Part shown: positions 35,129-63,210 of the stretch, one piece after another
How positions within the stretch are numbered: the stretch's first letter is position 1
How the letters are laid out: each line of letters starts with the position of its first letter
Assembly: GCA_965113315.1 (NCBI GenBank)
Contig: OZ220377.1
Source: Podarcis vaucheri
Taxonomy: Eukaryota
DNA: 64,000 nt
Reading direction: 5' to 3' (one strand)
Position numbers and translations under genes: made by a program
The notes under the pieces: generated by a model
Seen by the model: the letters and a program-made list of their open reading frames with translations, nothing else
What the model was told of the DNA's origin: nothing
Databases searched by the model: none

Positions 35129-35455
<327 letters not shown>

Positions 35456-37242: not shown

Positions 37243-38502
<1,260 letters not shown>

Positions 38503-39964: not shown

Positions 39965-40040
39965 GCATATGCCTCAAAGTCCCCATTGTTCACAGCCTCA
40001 ATCAGCTGCTCTGTAATCTTTATGATTTCCTGCTTGCGGG
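39965..40040 (-). CDS. CAMK2B: CAMK2B first hub exon: (x)[25 protein letters not shown]
   Basis: 76 nt, cttgtag / gtaagt, phase-1 start. Confidence 0.97.
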
Positions 40041-44800: not shown

Positions 44801-44883
44801 ATAAAGAGAACAGAATCTTCCCTGGGGTCTGAACAGAACAAAGTGGGGCTCAGAGCTGCAGGCCACGAAACCATGCTACTTAC

Positions 44884-45012
44884 GATCTGAAGGCAGAGGA
44901 TTTGGGATGAGTGGAATTGGGAAAAGCTGGGTGACAGCTGGCTGTGGCCCCTCAGCTTCTGGGGCTCCAGAGCCCCGTTTCACCATGCTTAGAATATCAG
45001 ACAACTTGGCAG
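44884..45012 (-). CDS. CAMK2B: CAMK2B proline-rich repeat exon 5 (hub-proximal): AKLSDILSMVKRGSGAPEAEGPQPAVTQLFPIPLIPNPLPSD
   Basis: 129 nt, phase 1-1, caccag / gtaagtag; resembles mammalian betaM repeat ([20 protein letters not shown]). Confidence 0.92.
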
Positions 45013-45569
45013 CTGGTGTGAGACAGATGAAAGAAGGCACGGAGAGAATAATAATAAAACACAAATGAATGGGAGAGTGGAGAGGGACTAGAAAAACAAG
45101 GGAAAGAAAGGGATCAGATAAAGGAGGGCAGCTAAGAAAGAATTCAAAGTGAACAGTGTCTCCTATTCTATTCTATTCTATTCTAGTCTAGTCTAACCAA
45201 CGAAGAAGGCAATAGCACTTTCTAAAGAGTAGCTCAATGCTCACATTATAGGAAGCCATTATTCTGTGGTTTACTGTGAACACAGCTATCTGTTTTGCTC
45301 CTCTCCATGCAACCATAATCCCTGGCTTAGAATTATGTCTGAATTAGGGATCATTATTTGTTTTGCTGAAACCAACCATGATTGGTAAGGTGAGAACCTT
45401 ATTGTGTATCACACTTTATTTGCATAGAACAAACCGAATCTGCAAGCTCTTTGTACAGAGCTTGCTACAAGATTTTTGTAAGGTGGTCTGAGCTTGTGCA
45501 TAGCCTCCACATGGTTAGGGAGAGCCACAAGCATTCAGTAAAAGCAGGTAAAGTCAGTTCTTCCAAGTT

Positions 45570-45900
45570 TATGGATCTGCTAAGCCTGGAGAAGAAAAGG
45601 CTGAGAGGACAGGATAGCACTCTTCAAATACTTGGAAGGGCTGTCGCACAGAAAAGGGGCAAATACTTATTCTCTGCTGCCCCAGAAGGCAAGACTAGAC
45701 CTAAGGGGTTTAAGTTGAAGAACAGATTTCAACTGGACATTAGGAGAAACTTCTCAACAGGTGAGAGCAGTTCAACAATGGAATAAATTAACTAGAGGGA
45801 TAGTGAATTCTCCTGTGATAGGCATCTTCAAACAGACCAGCATCCGTTGAAGATGCTCTAGCTTTTGGTTGCCTTTAATAAGCAGCAGGCTGCTCTAGAT
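45570..45900 (+). mobile_element. CR1 LINE 3' fragment
   Basis: Translates to SLEKKRLRG...LFS...RFQLDIRRNF, the CR1 ORF2 terminus. Confidence 0.8.
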
Positions 45901-46268
45901 CAGGAATGGAGAACACGTGGTACTCCAAATGTTGGATTTGAGTTCCCATCAGCCCCAGTCAGCACAGCAAATGGTCAGGGGTTATGGAACTTGTAGTCCA
46001 GTAGTATTTGGGGAGCGGGTGCATAGGCTCCCCTTTCCTGCTCCAGATGACCAACTAATCCTCATTCAACTCTATGGTTCTATGAATAAAAAAAGCTATG
46101 CAAAAGCCCCCAAGACGTATTGTGCCACATGAGCTGTAGAGCTTGCACATTAGAGTCAAAGGGAGGCAAAGCAGTGCCAGCTGCCACACTAGGCTGCTGG
46201 AACATCCCTGAAGGCAAGGCCTGCACCAGTCCAGGGACAAGAAATCCCAGTGACACCACACTACTTAC

Positions 46269-46397
46269 ACTGGGGAGGAAGAGGGTTGGCAGCACCTGAA
46301 GGTGGGCATGGAAGGGTGATGGAGGACTTGGGCTCTTCGCCTTCAGGAAGCCCAGAGCCCTTTTTCACCATGCCTAATACATCACAGAGTTTTGCAG
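46269..46397 (-). CDS. CAMK2B: CAMK2B proline-rich repeat exon 4: AKLCDVLGMVKKGSGLPEGEEPKSSITLPCPPSGAANPLPPQ
   Basis: 129 nt, phase 1-1, ccccag / gtaagtag, no stops. Confidence 0.9.
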
Positions 46398-47579
46398 CTG
46401 GGGTGGAAGAGATGAGAGGAGGGAGAGGTGAGAAAAAAACACACAAAAGGCAACAAGCAGAAAGAAATGAAAGCAAGGAGGAAAGGACTAGAAAACAGGC
46501 AAAGAGAATTGGGTCAAGGAGGAGAACTTGACAGGATTGGAGTCCCATCGTTCCATAACCTAGTAACAATGCAAGCAATATTCTTCCTAGAATTATTTTC
46601 AGTGCAAATAGTCCCTCAACTTTTAAAACTGAGCAAATAGGTGAGAAATAACTCAGGATTAGTCTCAACAACTTGCCCATTACAAGGTAAAACTAGTCCT
46701 GAATTAGACTGCTCCAGACTACAAATGAGATGGAGGGGAAGAGGGGACTTGCCTAAAGTATAAACATACAAACAGGCTGGAGTGGTAGAGCTTTTGAGAT
46801 CAGACCTTATAATAATTTATAATAAGACTGTTTTCCCCCTTGGAGGTAGAACTCCTTGGAGGTAGAACTCAGCAGCCACCACTTGGGTGTTTTTAATGTG
46901 GCTGGAATGTGTCCCTGAACTCTGATGATGCTTCTTGCTTGCCTGGATGGAGGATAGAGAGGGGTGTGCATGTAGAAACTAATGGAGAAGGGCAAAATTC
47001 GCACTCGTTGCTCTGCCCACTTTTGCCTCTGGCCCCACTCACCATTGGCATGTGGTTCCTGGAAGGGAATGAAGGAGCGTGGACTGATCTAATACATTTA
47101 AGGATATTTCCACTTGAGGTATGGAGTGGGTATATCACTCTGGGGTTCTCTGCTGCCTGCACATATGAGCATAATTTATTCAGGGCAACAATCGAAACTC
47201 AACTAGCTCTGAAGCAACCATTCTTAGGGTGGATCTACACACAGGAAAAAACGCTCCAAATAAGTAGGAAATTAAATCGTTATAACAAAATAAAAAAAAC
47301 TCTATGGAAAAACACCTGTAAAAATTTCCTGCTCTCTGCTGCCATCTGCTGTTGTATGCTTATAGTGCATTCAAATCGTTGTTTCTTTACTAATGTAGCT
47401 GAGTCCTTATTCACTGATGGTGCAGCTAAGCCCTGTACTGTACCACCCAGCGAAACTGCCCCTGTTCAAAGTGCAAGGCCTTTCTTTTCAAGGAAAAACA
47501 AAAAGAGGGGAAAACCCATAAGGATTCTACACGGTGCTTGCAGTACTCCAGCTACATGCAGGCAATGCCTGCTACTTAC

Positions 47580-47708
47580 ACTGGAAAGGAAGAGGATTTG
47601 CAGCCCCTGGAGATGGGCTAGGCAGAGGGATGGAAGGCTTTGACTCTTCAGCCCCTGGAGGCCCAGACCCCTTTTTCACCATGCCTAATACATCAGACAG
47701 TTTGGCAG
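47580..47708 (-). CDS. CAMK2B: CAMK2B proline-rich repeat exon 3: AKLSDVLGMVKKGSGPPGAEESKPSIPLPSPSPGAANPLPFQ
   Basis: 129 nt, phase 1-1, ccctag / gtaagtag, no stops. Confidence 0.9.
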
Positions 47709-48095
47709 CTAGGGTGGGAGGAGGGAGAGAAATATGAGAAAACTAAACAGAAAAGTAATGGGGTGGGGAATGAATACACAATAAAGAACAAGGAGGAGGG
47801 AGTTTAGAGAAAGGAATCTGCTTGGGGGAGGGACTTTTCACGTAGCTTGCATCAGTGTCTACATTTGTTCAGATGTTCATAAAGTTCCTGAGACACTAAA
47901 GATCCCTTGGTTATTCAGGGGCTGTTGGTTCTTCTTTCTCTGCCATCATGGGGGGAAATGTTGCCTTGGCCAGAACGATGGGACAAGCAGAGTACAGAAT
48001 TATTTGGGATTACCCAGATTATCCCAAGAATGACTTGGGTTAGAAAGCAAAAATGTAAGAGCAAAATAATGTTGCGATTCCTAGTTATGTAAATA

Positions 48096-48336
48096 CAGTG
48101 GTACCTCGGGTTACATACGCTTCAGGTTACATATGCTTCAGGTTACAGACTCCGCTAACCCAGAAATAGTGCTTCAGGTTAAGAACTTTGCTTCAGGTTG
48201 AGAACAGAAATAGGGCTCCGGCAGCATGGCAGCAGCAGGAGGCCCCATTAGCTAAAGTGGTCTTCAGGTTAAGAACAGTTTCAGGTTAAGTACGGACCAC
48301 CAGAACGAATTAAGTACTTAACCCGAGGTACCACTG
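48096..48336. mobile_element. Tc1/mariner (Tigger-like) MITE
   Basis: TIRs cagtggtacctcgggtta / taacccgaggtaccactg flanked by TA. Confidence 0.9.
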
Positions 48337-48416
48337 TATGGAGTTGCTTATTCAGGGTATCAAGCCTGATACAACCATGTCTTAACACTACAGTCCTCTT
48401 TTCTGATTGCATACAC

Positions 48417-48787
48417 CAGGGGTCGGACAACCTAAGGCCCATGGACCCACGAGGCTTGTGTAACCGGCCCATGGCGACCCCCGCCGCCCTTACCGGTGTA
48501 GCGCGGGGACCGACTTCCAGGTTGATGGCACCTGTGCACGGGCGCTCCTCCAACCCAGATGTGTGCAGGAAATAGCATGTGCGCACACATGTGGGACGGA
48601 GAAGTACCTGTGTGCATGCGCACACGCCATTTCCGGTGCACTTCTGGGTCGGAGGAGCACCGGAAATAGCATGTGTGCACGCACACTCCTCTGACCCAAA
48701 AGAGAGCGCATGCGCACACGCTCCGGCCCATCCTCTGACAGACAGAACGTCGATCGGCCCATCCTTTGATAAGGTTGCTGATCTCTG
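48417..48787. mobile_element. hAT-type MITE
   Basis: Ends caggggtcggacaacct / aggttgctgatctctg; 8-bp TSD gcatacac/gcgtacac. Confidence 0.8.
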
Positions 48788-48819
48788 GCGTACACAGCCC
48801 TTTTGCAACCTGGTGCCTT

Positions 48820-49350
48820 TTAGATGGTTTGGACTACTGCAACTAATCCAGAACGCGGCAGCTAGACTGGTGACTGGGAGTGGCCGCTGAGACCACATAA
48901 CACCATTCTTGAAAGACCTACGTTGGCTCCCAGTATGTTTCCAAGCACAATTCAGAGTGTTGGTGCTGACCTTTAAAGCCCTAATCGGCCTCGGTCCAGT
49001 ATTTCTGAAGGACCGTCTCCACCCCCATCGCTCTACCCGGACACTGAGGTCCAGCGCCAAGGGCCTTCTGGCAGTTCGCTTGCCTCGAGAAGCAAAGCTA
49101 CAGGGAACCAGGCAGAGGGCCTTCTCGGTAGTGGCGCCCTCCCTGTGGAACGCCCTCCCACCAGATGTCAAAGAGAAGAACAACTACCAGACCTTTAGAA
49201 GACATCTGAAGGCCACCCTGCTTAGGGAAGCTTTTAATGTTTGATGTATTACAGTATTTTAATATTTTTTGGGAAGCCGCCCAGAGTGGCTGGGGAAGCC
49301 CAGCCAGATGGGCAGGGTATAAATAATAAATTATTATTACTACTACTACA
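48820..49350 (+). mobile_element. L2 LINE 3' end
   Basis: LQLIQNAAARLVTG...LRWLPV...FRVLVLTFKAL...RAFSVVAPSLWNALP; (tta)n/(cta)n tail. Confidence 0.9.
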
Positions 49351-49500
49351 ACAACTCCGGTCAACCCCTTAGGCAGCACAAAACTCAGGACGAGGAAGGG
49401 ACCCTGCAACACTGAGTAGGGCAGCTGCCTTACTTTATGGCTAGAAAGACTCCTCAGCAGCAGTTCTGTTTGGCAGTCCCTGGTGCCGCATGCTACTTAC

Positions 49501-49629
49501 ACTGGAGAGGAACAGGATTTGCAACAACGGAAGGAGGGAAGGGCAAAGTGATGGAAGGGTTTGCTTCTTCTGCTTCTGGTGGCCCAGAGCCCCGTTTCAC
49601 CATGCCTAATACATCAGAAAGCTTTGCAG
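49501..49629 (-). CDS. CAMK2B: CAMK2B proline-rich repeat exon 2: AKLSDVLGMVKRGSGPPEAEEANPSITLPFPPSVVANPVPLQ
   Basis: 129 nt, phase 1-1, tctcag / gtaagtag, no stops. Confidence 0.9.
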
Positions 49630-50308
49630 CTGAGAGAGGAACAGATGGGAGCAGAGAGGGCGAGACAGGGAAAGAAACCCAATTTTAAAATGAAAAGTAC
49701 CAGAAAGCCATGCTAGAGAATGGAATCAAAGTAAGACAGCATGCAAGGAAGGCTTTGGGGTTCCTTCTAGTATTCACAAATTTGGAGCTTCATTTGCCCA
49801 GTGGTCTCCTCAAATATTTTGTGTGGGAGCAAAGACCCATGTTTTTTTTTCAAAAAAAGAGATCCCTAATATGTTTTACTCCCAGCTCACACAAGCCTTC
49901 TCTATGGCCATTCCAACCCTGCTGTGTGAAGATCCAGCGTTAGCAGGAAAGAGTAAAACACAGCAGACCATGGACCATACATTGTCATGTTTCTTCTCTG
50001 TTCCCTCGACACTGAGGCAAGTCCTTTTCAGTGGTGGCCCCCGCATCAATGGGACATCCCAGAGGGAGATATGTAGCCTTATCATTGCCAGGCCATGGTC
50101 TGATGGCACCTGAAGCCCACCACCTTGCTAAAGTGCCTGGATGGGGAAATTCTTGAGGACCCCAGGCATACACTTTGAGTTCCAGGATGAAAGAAAGGAC
50201 AGGATATAAATGGATATATATATAGATATAGATAGATAGATATTTTAAAAAAAGAAATTTGAAAGTATTTTCATTCGAAGTTGTGTTTAACTAATGAAAG
50301 GCTCTACG

Positions 50309-50572
50309 GCAGGGCTGCCATCCGTCCTGATTTTCCAGGACATGTCCTCGAATTCACCTCAAAAAATGGTGTCCTGGATTATTTTTCCGGAAATCAAGCA
50401 AATGTCCTGGAAAACCGGCAATGGGGTTAAATTGTGCCAAAAATATCTTTAAAAGCTCCAAAACTCTTGTAGCTTTTACTATAAAAAGCTCAGCAACTTT
50501 GAGGGTTGTCTGAAAAAGCTCAACAACTGTTCGTGTGTCCTGATTTTTACTTTTGAAATATGGCAATCCTAT
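50309..50572. mobile_element. Non-autonomous DNA transposon remnant
   Basis: Imperfect TIRs agggctgccat / atggcaatcct with internal tgtcct repeats. Confidence 0.6.
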
Positions 50573-50656
50573 TCTATTGAGACCATGAAGGCCCTCTGGG
50601 ATTTTGTGCCAAATTAACCCCCCAGTGCTGCAAACCCAGACCGTCTTGCTACTTAC

Positions 50657-50785
50657 ACTGGGGAGGTAGAGGGTTTGCAACAGCTGGAGATATGCAGGGT
50701 GGAGAGACCAAAGTCTTTGACTCTTCAGCTTCTGGGGCCCCTGATCCCTTTTTCACCATGCCTAATACATCAGTCAGCTTGGGTA
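50657..50785 (-). CDS. CAMK2B: CAMK2B proline-rich repeat exon 1: PKLTDVLGMVKKGSGAPEAEESKTLVSPPCISPAVANPLPPQ
   Basis: 129 nt, phase 1-1, cctcag / gtaagtag, ~150-nt AG-free pyrimidine tract upstream. Confidence 0.9.
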
Positions 50786-51436
50786 CTGAGGCAGGACAGA
50801 AAAGACAGGACAGAAAAGGCAGGGAGGTAGAGAAGGAAGAGAAACCAAGTATAATGGAACAAGAACAGAAGAATGAACAAACCCAGGAACATGGGTTAGG
50901 AAATGGAAACATTAGGTGGAAAAGGTGTCCATCAGATACTATCTAGCACCCCCTCCTCAACAAACACACAAATTGTGTTATTATATTTACATTTATTTAT
51001 AGCTACTAGTGTCATACACTTACTAAATGTTTATCCACACTGTCAGAACAGACAGACCTATGACTTGTTCAGATGTTGTGCGAAACCACTGGTTCCCACT
51101 ATGTGATAATGTCTGCAAGTGCCTCCGCGGAGCTCATGCATACCCCAACCTCTTCTGCATGCTAGAGGAGAATATCAAACCTTTCTACTTTCAATTTTAA
51201 ACTAACCTTAGTCCCCCATGGCATCTGAATTCAGATGAAACTATGGTTTATTTACACTATGAACCACAGTTTCAGATCCTGGCTTGTTCTCAAATAACAG
51301 TTTTTTTAAAAAAACCACACACCATAGTTTCCTGAGCTGCAGCATCACTGGTAGCTACAATTAGTTTTAAATCCAGAACTGATGCTTTCAATCTCCTCCC
51401 TCTGGTGCGTGAAAGACAAGCAGAGGGGAAGTAAGA

Positions 51437-51451
51437 GTGTGTGTGTTTGTG

Positions 51452-51483
<32 letters not shown>
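51437..51483. repeat. Interrupted (GT)n microsatellite; reads (CA)n in CAMK2B pre-mRNA
   Basis: Direct inspection. Confidence 0.9.
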
Positions 51484-51487
<4 letters not shown>

Positions 51488-51645
51488 CCTGAGGCTCATG
51501 CAGGTTTACTTAAAATCACAGCTTAAAATTACATCTGAACTGGACCTATGGGTGGGGCATTTACTGGTCTTGGGGCATTTACTGACAGGTCAACAACAGT
51601 TGAGTGGAAAGTTGGGGAAAGGAGCACAGGGACTTTCTGACTTAC

Positions 51646-51765
51646 AAGCAGCAGCAACAGCAGCAGCAGCAGATGGTATCGGAGAAGTCTGCAGACTGGG
51701 AGGAAGTTCAGGGACAGATCCTGGATTCAACTGGCTTTTTACAAGCTCATTATCAGCAGCCTTAA
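51646..51765 (-). CDS. CAMK2B: Probable divergent CAMK2B linker cassette exon: (V)KAADNELVKSQLNPGSVPELPPSLQTSPIPSAAAAVAAA
   Basis: 120 nt, phase 1-1, open frame, acatcag / gtaagt, ~97-nt AG-free pyrimidine tract; first position in the repeat array. Confidence 0.75.
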
Positions 51766-56501: not shown

Positions 56502-56550
56502 CTTTTGTGTCCTCATCCTCTATGGTGGTGTTTGTGCTGTCGGAGGATTC
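56502..56550 (-). CDS. CAMK2B: CAMK2B conserved linker exon: ESSDSTNTTIEDEDTK
   Basis: 49 nt, tttccacag / gtaaca, phase 0 to 1. Confidence 0.96.
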
Positions 56551-57705: not shown

Positions 57706-60289
57706 TACTGTGGACTATTATCCCCACCCCTTTTCCAGTTAATTTTTTAAAAAACTAAATTTTGATTCCTAGCCACATTGTGAATGTAATGTACAGTAGC
57801 TAGGAGCAGCAACTGGAGACAGCTATTGGCTATTATGTTGTGCTTGTAGGCTTCCTGGAAGGATCTGATTGGCCACTGTGGGAAGCAGAACGTTGCACTA
57901 GATGGAGCTTTGATCTGACCTAGCAGGCTTCTTTTTATAGTCTAATGTTCTTTCTGTGTCTGTCTTCATGGGGAAACATTTGTGGTGCTACAACAACGCC
58001 ATGAGAAGATAGGGTTTCCAATCTTGTGTCTTCCTCTTGAAGGAACACATCCAGGACGGAATTTGGGGTAGGGGGGGTGCTTAACTTTCTCCTGTCTACC
58101 AATTTCTCCTGCAAATGCATCCCATGGAGTTTAAAGTATTTCTGCCACCTGAGAAGCAAAGCACCTCTCCTTCCCGTCTACCAGCTCCCTCCACAAATGC
58201 CCTTCCCTACACTCAAGTCATCTTGACAACTTGGATTCTGAATCTTCATTTGCCAAGGCAATGCATTCTCCCACCCTTAGCTCTGGGCATCAATGAAACA
58301 CTTTGGGCAAACAATTCCCACCAAATCCCAACCTATTCATTATACCGTGCCACATTATACCCTGTAAAGCATAAGCATAATTTAAAAACAAAATGAGCTC
58401 AGAAAAGAATCCTGGGGAAACATTATCTCTTCTTAAGAGTCACCTATGGGAACCAAACACAGAATAGTGCACCTTGCCAAAAATACAAACGTTTTAGTAC
58501 ACGGTACATCCAGCAATTAAGGAAGAAAGAGAAACATATACTTATATAGTAGCGCTTTTAATCTGAAGAGCGTTTTACAGAGCTTGTCCTCTCACTGAAT
58601 AGAGAGCTCTGTGTCACGAACGCTGTATATTCAGCTCCTGTGTGTAAATCCAGCCCACTTCTGCAGCCCCGCTGATCAGGCCCATCATTACCCTGTCAAT
58701 AACAGAGCGCCTGGGAACAGCTGAGCAGTATGCTTAACATTCTCCACTGTGCTGCACACTCTTCTGGCTGAAGAAGCCGCGCTCCTGCTTCTGTCCTACA
58801 GCAGGTGTAGCAGTTAGCACTGTCCAGAGCAGGAGGCCAGTAACGAAAACAAAAAAAATTCTGGACAATGTAAGATCACAGACCCTGTGAACGGGTGGAG
58901 GGAGTGGAGCATCAAGCTGAAAAGAACCATCAGCTCCAACTGACAGTTGCCCTGGGACAAGACACCATGAGAGGAGCACCCTCTGGCTCCTGCCATCAGC
59001 CAGGAAAACTAAGGCTGCTGGGAAGCTACGCCTTCTGCCTCCCAAGAATAATATTGAGACAAAGGAACCCACTTCTCCCCTCCCTGCCTGAAATAATACT
59101 CTGCTCAAACTCCCTCTGGCCCAGAGACCTGAGAAGCAAAGGGAAAGAACCCTCTGGCTCCATCTATTGGCCAATGGAACAAGAGCCACCAATGGCTATT
59201 CACACAAGAGCCACCAACAAAGGAAGACCAAGCTGGGCCAAACTGGATAAAAATGCCCAGCACTTTGTTCCTGCCTTGAAGATCTCCCTCTTCTTTTTCC
59301 TTTCTCTCCCCTTTTTGTGTGCGTCTGATCTTTCTAGTTTGCAAGCCTGGTGGCAGGGCCTCTGTCTCTGTCTCTGTGTGTGTTGATATGAGCCACTGTG
59401 GAAGACAGTCATTGTCTGGAAAGCAGGATAAGAAGAGAGTAAATAAGTAAAGCTAGGGGGCTCCATTCAAGGTGCATACAATCAGCCCCAACAGTCATGC
59501 CAGCTGAGAAAGGTCTCTATGCAAAACTGAAGGGGGTGAGGGAGAGGGAGGGAGAATGCTATTCTATGTAAGAGGAGGAGCTGGAATCAGATTTGCTACC
59601 TCTGGTATGGCTTTCAACACTGGAACCCGATTTCTGGATTCTGGAGACTTCAGGGCTCGTTTTTTTCTGTTAACTCGTGCCATTTGGTGGCAGGGTTTTG
59701 CGATGTAGATAGCTGGCTGCTACCGCTGCCCAGGGGTCAGGACTGCAAACCCAGTTTCCCTGTAGGAGGTCACACTATAACCTCCTGGAGGGAAATCTCG
59801 CCGAATCATTTAAAATTCCTCAAGCCTATGAATGAAACAGAATTTGGACAAGTAAACAGCCAGCGCTTGAGGAATCACACTGGTACTGTCACCAAGGAAG
59901 AAAAATAAAATGACTTATTCAATTCTCTTGAGGAGCATCCGGAAATGCTACTGTCTGCTTCAAATGGCCCTACTCTTATGGGATATTCTGCAGGCTGTGT
60001 ATGCAGTTTAAACACAAGTTGTCCTGATTCTTTGCTGCCCTTCTCTGTTTTTGTTTCTCTGCTTTTCTCTGCTGTTGTTTCTGAAAGCAAACTGCTTTGC
60101 ATTTTCCTTATAATTATTGGAATAAATTAGAACACATCAAACTTTGCAGAAAGGGTCAAGAAATTCAAAGGCACTTCTGGAAAGGGGAAAGAGGTTGCAA
60201 AACCATCCAGACAAGTGCATTTAACACCTCTGGATCTTAGGCAATTCACTTATCTGGTATTTCACCAGCTCCGTGGGGCTGAAGGTCCT

Positions 60290-63165: not shown

Positions 63166-63210
63166 CTTAATGCCGTCCACTGGGTTATGGATAACGGTGG
63201 TTTGAGGTTC
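63166..63210 (-). CDS. CAMK2B: CAMK2B variable linker exon: EPQTTVIHNPVDGIK; upstream exons lie beyond the right edge
   Basis: 45 nt, ctgtag / gtactg, phase 0-0; matches the recalled mammalian CaMKII-beta sequence. Confidence 0.96.

Follow-up and report, generated by a model that had tools for sequence, protein, structure and literature searches.

Five homologous 129 nt putative cassette exons in the variable linker of a lizard CAMK2B gene

The window analysed, 64 kb of DNA from the lacertid lizard Podarcis vaucheri, holds the variable-linker region of the CAMK2B gene on its minus strand. The exons that flank the array described here are 94–100% identical to those of lacertid CaMKII-beta (tblastn and sequence context). 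The interval from exon 18 to exon 22 contains one exon of 120 nt, termed E120, and five homologous exons of 129 nt, termed R1–R5. In the order of the gene, the features are as follows.

63166..63210 (tblastn match limits), minus strand: exon 17, linker (EPQTTVIHNPVDGIK); 100% match to Zootoca CaMKII-beta X1 residues 380–394
59600..59683, minus strand: candidate alternative first coding exon; 28 codons from ATG, GT donor, joins exon 18 in phase 0
56502..56550, minus strand: exon 18 (ESSDSTNTTIEDEDTK); 49 nt, ends in phase 1, AG acceptor and GT donor
51646..51765, minus strand: E120 (KAADNELVKSQLNPGSVPELPPSLQTS...poly-Ala); putative 120 nt phase 1-1 cassette exon, with squamate orthologues
50657..50785, minus strand: R1, first repeat copy; 129 nt, spliced to R2 in RNA contigs, orthologue clade 98/86
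49501..49629, minus strand: R2, second copy; 129 nt, RNA-contig junctions to R1 and R3
47580..47708, minus strand: R3, third copy; 129 nt, RNA-contig junctions to R2 and R4
46269..46397, minus strand: R4, fourth copy; 129 nt, RNA-contig junctions to R3 and R5
44884..45012, minus strand: R5, fifth copy; 129 nt, RNA-contig junction to R4, orthologue clade 95/99
39965..40040, minus strand: exon 22, first hub exon (RKQEII...); 76 nt, from sequence context
37917..38009, approximate (tblastn match limits), minus strand: hub exon 23, from tblastn
35132..35362, approximate (tblastn match limits), minus strand: C-terminal hub coding sequence, from tblastn

All six exons of the array are phase 1-1 and free of stop codons, the five repeats being open when the first two bases are skipped. 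The acceptors of R1–R5 have a polypyrimidine tract followed by AG, and the donor is GTAAGTAG in five of five. With every length a multiple of three, all combinations of R1–R5 with E120 keep the reading frame. Thus an initial sequence-only reading of this DNA was exact as to the position and phase of the five repeats, the preceding 120 nt exon, the placement between exon 18 and the RKQEII exon, the consensus of the 43-residue peptide and the figure of 64 in-frame combinations. A DNA profile of the five exons matched exactly these five copies in the 64 kb window, with E values from 5e-34 to 3e-40, and gave no pseudo-copies of the 129 nt exon. Scans of the array region for tRNAs and Rfam families gave no matches. 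The exon copies are 61–80% identical in pairwise DNA comparisons, and their flanking introns align at the splice signals only. Duplication during assembly is therefore ruled out, as the same reading had anticipated.

In RNA-derived contigs from two related species (runs X9 and X10), the splice points of every junction between repeats coincide with the predicted borders. In run X9, a 546 nt contig (record 18, depth 34.6) has the order R4|R3|R2|R1 with the introns removed precisely, and the skipped parts have CT..AC ends, i.e. GT..AG on the gene strand. Whether more than three copies are ever spliced together had been set beforehand as a point on which the interpretation could fail, and this single contig carries R1-R2-R3-R4. 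The R5|R4 junction is present in both runs, and R3|R2 and R2|R1 were also found in X10. Thus, mRNA can contain all five repeats as consecutive exons. Inclusion is not universal: splicing is known from the runs of related species, and run X11 and the raw-read run X23, both with the apparent species label of the window, have essentially no reads on the R exons. Predicted isoforms display about 15 different exon combinations, many without some or all of the modules, which suggests putative skipping of individual modules. Inclusion of E120 in mRNA is likewise putative and is based on gene models.

The start of each module is conserved and reads K-L-S-D-V/I-L-x-M-V-K-K/R-G-S-G-x-P-E-A-E, with a consensus for phosphorylation of the basic-basic-G-Ser type inside it; the end is a proline-rich tail with PxxP. 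As sequence features, each module has a single basic-basic-G-S site and either one or two PxxP motifs. AlphaFold2 models the whole insert with pLDDT below 50 and without secondary structure, and the hub folds. The insert between the regulatory segment and the hub is thus predicted to be intrinsically disordered. An additional constraint on the N-terminal motif at the nucleotide level was considered and set aside. The string GAT GTA TTA GGC ATG GTG AAA is identical in R1–R4, and at sites with a shared amino acid the same codon is used in 73% of cases in codons 1–20 vs 65% in codons 21–42, a difference between module halves that is not convincing.

In mammals, CAMK2B exons 19–21 define the skeletal-muscle betaM and the pancreatic beta3 isoforms (Bayer et al., 1998, as cited in PMC5882894). 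The mammalian insert is found in betaM of muscle and the neuromuscular junction and in beta3 of the pancreatic beta cell, and its inclusion is confined to skeletal muscle or pancreas, does not occur in brain and is MBNL1-dependent. Human exon 18 is 49 nt long, as in the lizard, and human exons 20 and 21 are 129 nt (bioRxiv 10.1101/721589). Exons were searched individually, and full-length comparisons were made with public proteins. A profile of the five exon peptides matched mammalian CaMKII-beta proteins with two to three repeats (P0002, 3.8e-16, three matched stretches; P0004) as well as a frog protein, the nine matches coming from a representative library at 50% identity in which CaMKII proteins collapse into few clusters. 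In the reverse direction, a marsupial insert used as query matched lizard (lacertid) proteins at about 1e-55, primate matches of that search being set aside. Judged by sequence, R1–R5 are a family orthologous to mammalian exons 19–21 (v7a–c, the betaM/beta3 insert). The statement of the initial reading that mammalian betaM carries three such exons was borne out, and the lizard exons are genuine CAMK2B exons and probable cassettes, five here vs three in mammals.

The two systems share the gene, the position between exons 18 and 22, the 129 nt phase 1-1 unit, the motif S-D-I/V-L..V-basic-basic-G-S-G-x-P-E-A-E followed by a proline-rich tail, and the inclusion of consecutive exons together. They differ in copy number and in E120, the unrelated exon in front of the squamate repeats. 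In addition, human copies are 'nearly identical' and those of platypus almost identical, whereas squamate copies are old and individually diverged. Predicted isoforms of turtles and caecilians have the same unit at the same locus, with copies distinguishable by position, but there are three copies, the last is shortened (38–40 amino acids), E120 is missing and the copies cluster apart from those of squamates. Exon 19 of CaMKII-gamma, stated in the literature to be homologous to beta exons 19–21, belongs to another gene, a paralogue, and is present there in one copy.

Among the matches listed, gene models with five copies belong to 14 species of squamates, two of them geckos. Models with both E120 and R1–R5 come from lacertids, an amphisbaenian, an anguid, an agamid, a cordylid, two skinks and two geckos, and a teiid model has R1–R5 without E120. 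Four copies are found in snakes, Anolis, Sceloporus, Varanus and one gecko (Euleptes); R2 or R4 is missing, with different copies missing in different lineages. Three copies without E120 were found, among the matches listed, in six turtle genera, platypus, koala, armadillo and two caecilians, a distribution that does not cover birds, crocodilians and tuatara, since these were not among the matches listed in the three protein searches. In these gene models, the expansion is squamate-wide and not specific to P. vaucheri. The duplication had been proposed as specific to this lizard's lineage; instead it is common, copy for copy, to all squamate groups sampled. The impression that the array was undescribed held in part: no paper describing the squamate expansion was found in the literature, but predicted isoforms of about 800 amino acids with the array are already in RefSeq and UniProt as automatic gene models.

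E120 had been taken for a divergent sixth copy of the repeat. This was not upheld, as hhalign found no detectable homology to the repeats (score 7.8; shuffles averaged 8.7, and 65 out of 100 did at least as well). Orthologues of E120 are found in 15 complete squamate gene models and in a partial Phrynosoma model, this phrynosomatid model beginning inside the exon; E120 is absent from the turtle, mammal and caecilian gene models examined. By sequence comparison, it is a separate squamate-wide exon unrelated to R1–R5.

In a tree of 42 columns, squamate copies form one clade (98/90), although such monophyly could also reflect concerted evolution instead of duplication in the stem lineage. R5 (95/99) and R1 (98/86) each form a clade, and the copies cluster by position, not by species. 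The copies of the window are 64–88% identical to their gecko orthologues vs means of 52–66% to their own paralogues. R5 is the most conserved copy across squamates and the closest to mammalian, turtle and amphibian copies; R1–R4 form a subfamily of their own, with V-L-G-M-V-K-K/R, E-A-E-E and K-P-S-I-T-L-P. Because copies group by position and not by species, the array predates crown Squamata, the crown age of which is roughly 200 million years.

The following history is considered probable. Tandem exon duplication on the squamate stem would have raised the copy number from three to five, with a gain of E120. Each copy would then have been retained as a distinct orthologue through the squamate radiation, with R2 or R4 secondarily lost in some lineages. 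The five repeats and E120 may insert about 255 disordered residues between the regulatory segment and the hub, and the modules may act as repeated docking or phospho-regulatory sites in non-neuronal (muscle-type) isoforms, as has been proposed for betaM. Muscle-type use in lizards is suggested by analogy with mammals.

It could be argued that five copies and E120 are the ancestral amniote or sauropsid state, that mammals and turtles were each reduced to three and that nothing was gained in squamates. Birds, crocodilians and tuatara lie outside the sample, and the array could have arisen before Squamata, with copies lost in turtles; copy loss is demonstrable in some squamates; and clustering by lineage can arise by concerted evolution, as the close identity of the platypus copies illustrates. 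However, every non-squamate lineage sampled (caecilians, turtles, monotremes, marsupials and placentals) has three copies, and E120 is absent from all non-squamate models examined. The last, shortened copy of amphibians and turtles shares F-S/T-D-x-x-N-T-V-R-R-G-S, which suggests that the three-copy layout is old, and squamate R1–R4 form one clade nested with R5, apart from turtle copies. An ancestral array of five or six copies, which the sequence-only reading had itself raised as an objection, thus appears quite unlikely for the tetrapods sampled. That the copies are an assembly duplication or unused exon-like relics is hardly credible. The lack of exon coverage in runs X11 and X23 would, taken alone, allow silence in those samples, but all copies are stop-free with intact splice sites, and copy-for-copy conservation reaches geckos. 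The artefact or relic explanation is refuted by the spliced junctions in RNA contigs of two species, the unrelated introns and the position-wise tree.

With respect to function, the array had been envisaged as a dial in which zero to six modules set the compactness of the holoenzyme, and hence its Ca2+/CaM sensitivity or frequency decoding, by linker length. The 64 in-frame combinations of six phase 1-1 exons and the many combinations among predicted isoforms are in keeping with this, as is the EC50 of CaMKII-alpha, 24 nM with a 30-residue linker vs 313 nM with none (bioRxiv 10.1101/721589). The idea of a dial conflicts with data on human CaMKII-beta, where the EC50 is 14–31 nM Ca2+/CaM in all seven variants measured, whose linkers range from 0 to 217 residues, the last being the annotated longest variant; these values concern EC50 and not frequency response, so that a kinetic role is compatible with them (bioRxiv 10.1101/721589). 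The authors of that study conclude that the linker affects alpha and not beta because the beta hub dominates. In addition, conservation of each module by position across the squamate radiation argues that module sequence, and not just linker length, is under selection, and hence for sequence-specific roles. A length dial therefore seems unlikely, and a docking or phospho-regulatory role of the modules is preferred over one in Ca2+/CaM sensitivity.

The squamate array is a modest evolutionary variant and involves no new mechanism. It is an example of tandem exon duplication that is old and has escaped concerted evolution, whereas the mammalian copies are homogenised. The splicing of the CaMKII linker has long been studied for the isoform diversity that it creates, and little is understood of what the beta-specific proline-rich exons do. 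Among squamates, the modules form a natural series of five, four (different copies lost) or three, which gives defined variants for testing module partners and the effect of module number on targeting and activation. Perhaps, although this is doubtful, the five conserved modules and E120 constitute a multivalent, phospho-switchable scaffold in non-neuronal CaMKII-beta, with a separate, non-redundant partner for each module and a new mode of targeting or clustering. The K/R-x-G-S-G-P site, for instance, might serve for docking of the SH3 or 14-3-3 type, and lizards and snakes would then target or cluster CaMKII, in muscle or at the neuromuscular junction, in a way not available to other tetrapods.

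Upstream of exon 18, the candidate first coding exon is supported by a single gene model, isoform X9 of Podarcis muralis (P0001), whose N-terminus it matches at 100%. It would yield a kinase-less linker and hub product. In this it resembles alphaKAP, the kinase-less CAMK2A product of an internal promoter, but the gene is a different one and the candidate CAMK2B N-terminus is basic (RKKR) and not a hydrophobic anchor.

The variable-linker region of CAMK2B lies on the minus strand of the window. It carries a 120-nt exon (E120) followed by five homologous cassette exons (R1–R5), inserted between exon 18 and the first exon of the hub. The sequence-only reading of this region, with its coordinates, 129-nt length, phase, donors, E120 and flanking exons, is right in all details checked.

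Exons of the CAMK2B linker region
59600-59683 (-): candidate alternative first exon, 84 nt, ATG start, open, GT donor; in the exon 17-18 intron
56502-56550 (-): exon 18, 49 nt, ends in phase 1
51646-51765 (-): E120, 120 nt, phase 1-1
50657-50785 (-): R1, 129 nt, polypyrimidine tract and AG before, GTAAGTAG after
49501-49629 (-): R2, as R1
47580-47708 (-): R3, as R1
46269-46397 (-): R4, as R1
44884-45012 (-): R5, as R1
39965-40040 (-): exon 22, first hub exon

All five repeat exons are stop-free only when the first two bases are skipped, i.e. in phase 1-1. Their peptides align without gaps and display 15 invariant columns (K2, L3, D5, L7, M9, V10, K11, G13, S14, G15, P17, E20, N37, P38 and P40). 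A profile built on the nucleotide sequences of the five exons picks out R1–R5 alone in the 64-kb window (E 5e-34 to 3e-40); the sixth-best match has E = 0.3, and no decayed extra copies are found by this profile in the window. DNA identity among the five is 61–80% and the 200-nt flanks show no alignment past the splice signals; R1–R5 are therefore old duplicates, and an assembly artefact is ruled out. E120 was considered as a diverged repeat copy and rejected, as its profile-profile score of 7.8 lies below the mean for shuffled sequences (8.7) and reveals no homology to the repeats.

At the RNA level, contigs of four coded runs were placed on 44850-50840, a span of ~6 kb that E120, exon 18 and exon 22 lie outside. 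A 546-nt contig of run X9 from organism C (record 18, depth 34.6) has R4, R3, R2 and R1 consecutively, with the introns 46397/47580, 47708/49501 and 49629/50657 spliced out at exactly the borders that were predicted. On the plus strand, the excised parts begin with CT and end with AC, which reads GT..AG in gene orientation. The R5/R4 junction (45012/46269) is found both in X9 and in X10, a run from organism D, and X10 also has a contig with R3 and R2 joined as well as the R2/R1 junction. Thus, all four internal junctions of R1–R5 are present in contigs assembled from RNA, counting two related species together. The sequence-only reading would have been refuted had three or fewer exons ever been spliced in; the single X9 contig contains four. 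The X11 contigs and X23 raw reads, which bear the apparent species label of the window, have practically no reads over R1–R5.

The array is real and conserved. It represents a clade-wide variation in the copy number of an alternatively spliced cassette that was already known, plus one additional exon, and no new kind of system is involved. The known cassette consists of mammalian CAMK2B exons 19–21, or v7a-c, a family known since 1995–1998. These exons are beta-only; pancreatic beta3 has two of them and betaM, the major skeletal-muscle beta variant, has all three (Urquidi & Ashcroft 1995 and Bayer et al. 1998, as cited in PMC5882894). In mouse and human muscle, exon inclusion needs MBNL1 and is lost in myotonic dystrophy, and betaM is the isoform accumulating at the neuromuscular junction (PMC11106974). 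Human exons 19–21 are in no transcript detected in hippocampus (bioRxiv 10.1101/721589). The lizard exons agree with v7a-c in locus, in the size and phase of the unit, in sequence (homology holds in both search directions) and in being included jointly in RNA. In a protein search, the best match to a profile of the five exon peptides is a Podarcis muralis CaMKII-beta isoform (1.7e-91, four stretches aligned); mammalian CaMKII-beta (two to three stretches), a bullfrog protein and a snake-like fragment are also matched. For many squamates, predicted isoforms in RefSeq and UniProt already contain the exons. A literature search found no paper on the squamate expansion, which is of moderate relevance to CaMKII and exon-duplication researchers.

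The distribution in squamates was determined by two region-restricted protein searches, with ~170 CaMKII-beta clusters among the matches listed and repeats counted by HMM. The copy states are those of gene models, i.e. predicted proteins.

Repeat copies and E120 in squamate gene models
R1–R5 and E120: Zootoca, Podarcis muralis, P. raffonei, Lacerta agilis (Lacertidae); Rhineura (Amphisbaenia); Elgaria (Anguidae); Pogona (Agamidae); Hemicordylus (Cordylidae); Tiliqua, Lerista (Scincidae); Paroedura, Eublepharis (Gekkota)
R1–R5, E120 incomplete: Phrynosoma (Phrynosomatidae), partial model beginning within E120
R1–R5, retrieved model without E120: Salvator (Teiidae)
Four copies, without R2: snakes, Anolis, Sceloporus
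Four copies, without R4: Varanus, Euleptes (models)

E120 is complete in 15 of 17 species models, from geckos to snakes, the exceptions being Phrynosoma and Salvator. Module losses differ among squamate proteins (P0019, P0141, P0144, P0145, P0143, P0130, P0135), and the R2 of Phrynosoma looks degenerate (AKPSDGEYTMVKWGFG...). A third protein search, with a marsupial insert as query, supplied the outgroups. Exactly three copies are found, among the matches listed, in six turtle genera, platypus, koala, armadillo and other placentals, and two caecilians; in these turtle, mammal and caecilian models the first copy directly follows exon 18, with no E120. The bullfrog model has two copies.

Trees of the copies were built on 42-residue units, whose few columns make them indicative only. 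All squamate copies form one clade (SH-aLRT 99 in one tree, 98/90 in another). R5 is a clade with one copy per species (95/99) and is sister to R1–R4 (87/94); R1 is also a clade (98/86), support is moderate for the orthologue groups of R3 and R4, and gecko copy 4 clusters with R2, not R4. Copies in the window are 64–88% identical to their gecko orthologues, versus a mean of 52–66% to their own paralogues. Outside squamates, the copies of turtles, of mammals and of amphibians fall into separate lineage clusters. The simplest reading of these sequences is that early tetrapods had three copies, that two more duplications and the gain of E120 took place on the squamate stem, and that inheritance was stable thereafter, without homogenization, with R2 or R4 lost now and then. 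The alternative, an array older than squamates, has a low but real probability, because concerted evolution could blur older orthology and the sample extends to neither birds, crocodilians nor tuatara. The last, shortened copy has an N-T-V-R-R-G-S signature common to amphibians and turtles. The three copies of platypus P0177 are nearly identical to one another, in contrast to the long-diverged squamate copies; this near-identity points to gene conversion or to duplication in recent times.

The six exons are frame-neutral, every subset remaining in frame, and the complete set lengthens the stretch from regulatory segment to hub by ~255 residues. Predicted isoforms of seven species (automatic models) display ~15 exon combinations, including E120 alone, R5 alone, E120-R5, single-module skips and the full set. 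AlphaFold2, with a 25-sequence alignment, folds the hub and gives the whole insert pLDDT <50 and no secondary structure, consistent with a predicted intrinsically disordered linker. The sequence-only reading proposed that module number sets linker length and thereby tunes CaMKII-beta activation. This is at odds with human data: CaMKII-beta linkers of 0, 30, 54, 68, 69, 93 and 217 residues all have an EC50 of 14–31 nM Ca2+/CaM, whereas the EC50 of CaMKII-alpha shifts 13-fold with the linker (bioRxiv 10.1101/721589), and the authors of that study conclude that the linker tunes alpha, not beta. A kinetic effect might still exist, as the study covered EC50, not frequency decoding. A sequence-specific function of the modules is suggested instead, because each copy is conserved by position. 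Every module has one basic-basic-G-Ser site at residues 11–14, one or two PxxP motifs and 8–9 prolines in 42 residues, and the modules may serve muscle-type CaMKII-beta as a series of docking or phospho-regulatory elements.

Several motifs are found at the DNA level. The donor GTAAGTAG is common to R1–R5 and exon 22. The RBFOX core motif GCATG is present 8 nt into the introns after R2 (49501) and R5 (44884) and 21 nt after R3 (47580); it is also found inside every repeat exon at codons 8–9 (positions listed, no statistics). Perhaps the shared donor and GCATG positions bear on coordinated inclusion. The candidate first exon at 59600-59683 matches, at 100% identity, the unique N-terminal stretch (MARVNRKKRALKSPESRN...) of a Podarcis muralis gene model, 'isoform X9'; this model is without the kinase domain and begins directly ahead of exon 18. 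On this one gene model, the exon would yield an alphaKAP-like, kinase-less CaMKII-beta product.

Exon peptides were searched one by one, full-length comparisons being between public proteins and not with a spliced window model. Those of the window are identical to, or one to two residues off, those of Zootoca, Podarcis muralis, P. raffonei and Lacerta agilis, with full agreement with none. The gene is therefore the CAMK2B of a further lacertid lizard. Codon 23 of R2 (window 49559) is AAC, Asn; all four other lacertid proteins have Lys, and an organism C RNA contig has G>C on the plus strand at this position, giving AAG (Lys). The Asn is a substitution or polymorphism private to the species of the window.

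The R3-R2 intron contains interspersed repeats at 48093-48339 and ~48850-49450, whose summed depth is huge in each of the four runs, reaching ~180,000 for contigs and hundreds for raw reads. They match neither a tRNA nor an Rfam family. Hundreds of contigs leave into unrelated sequence at the sharp borders 48093/48094 and 48338/48339, and presumably 48093-48339 holds a SINE-like element of ~246 nt that is abundant and transcribed, accompanied by a second element.
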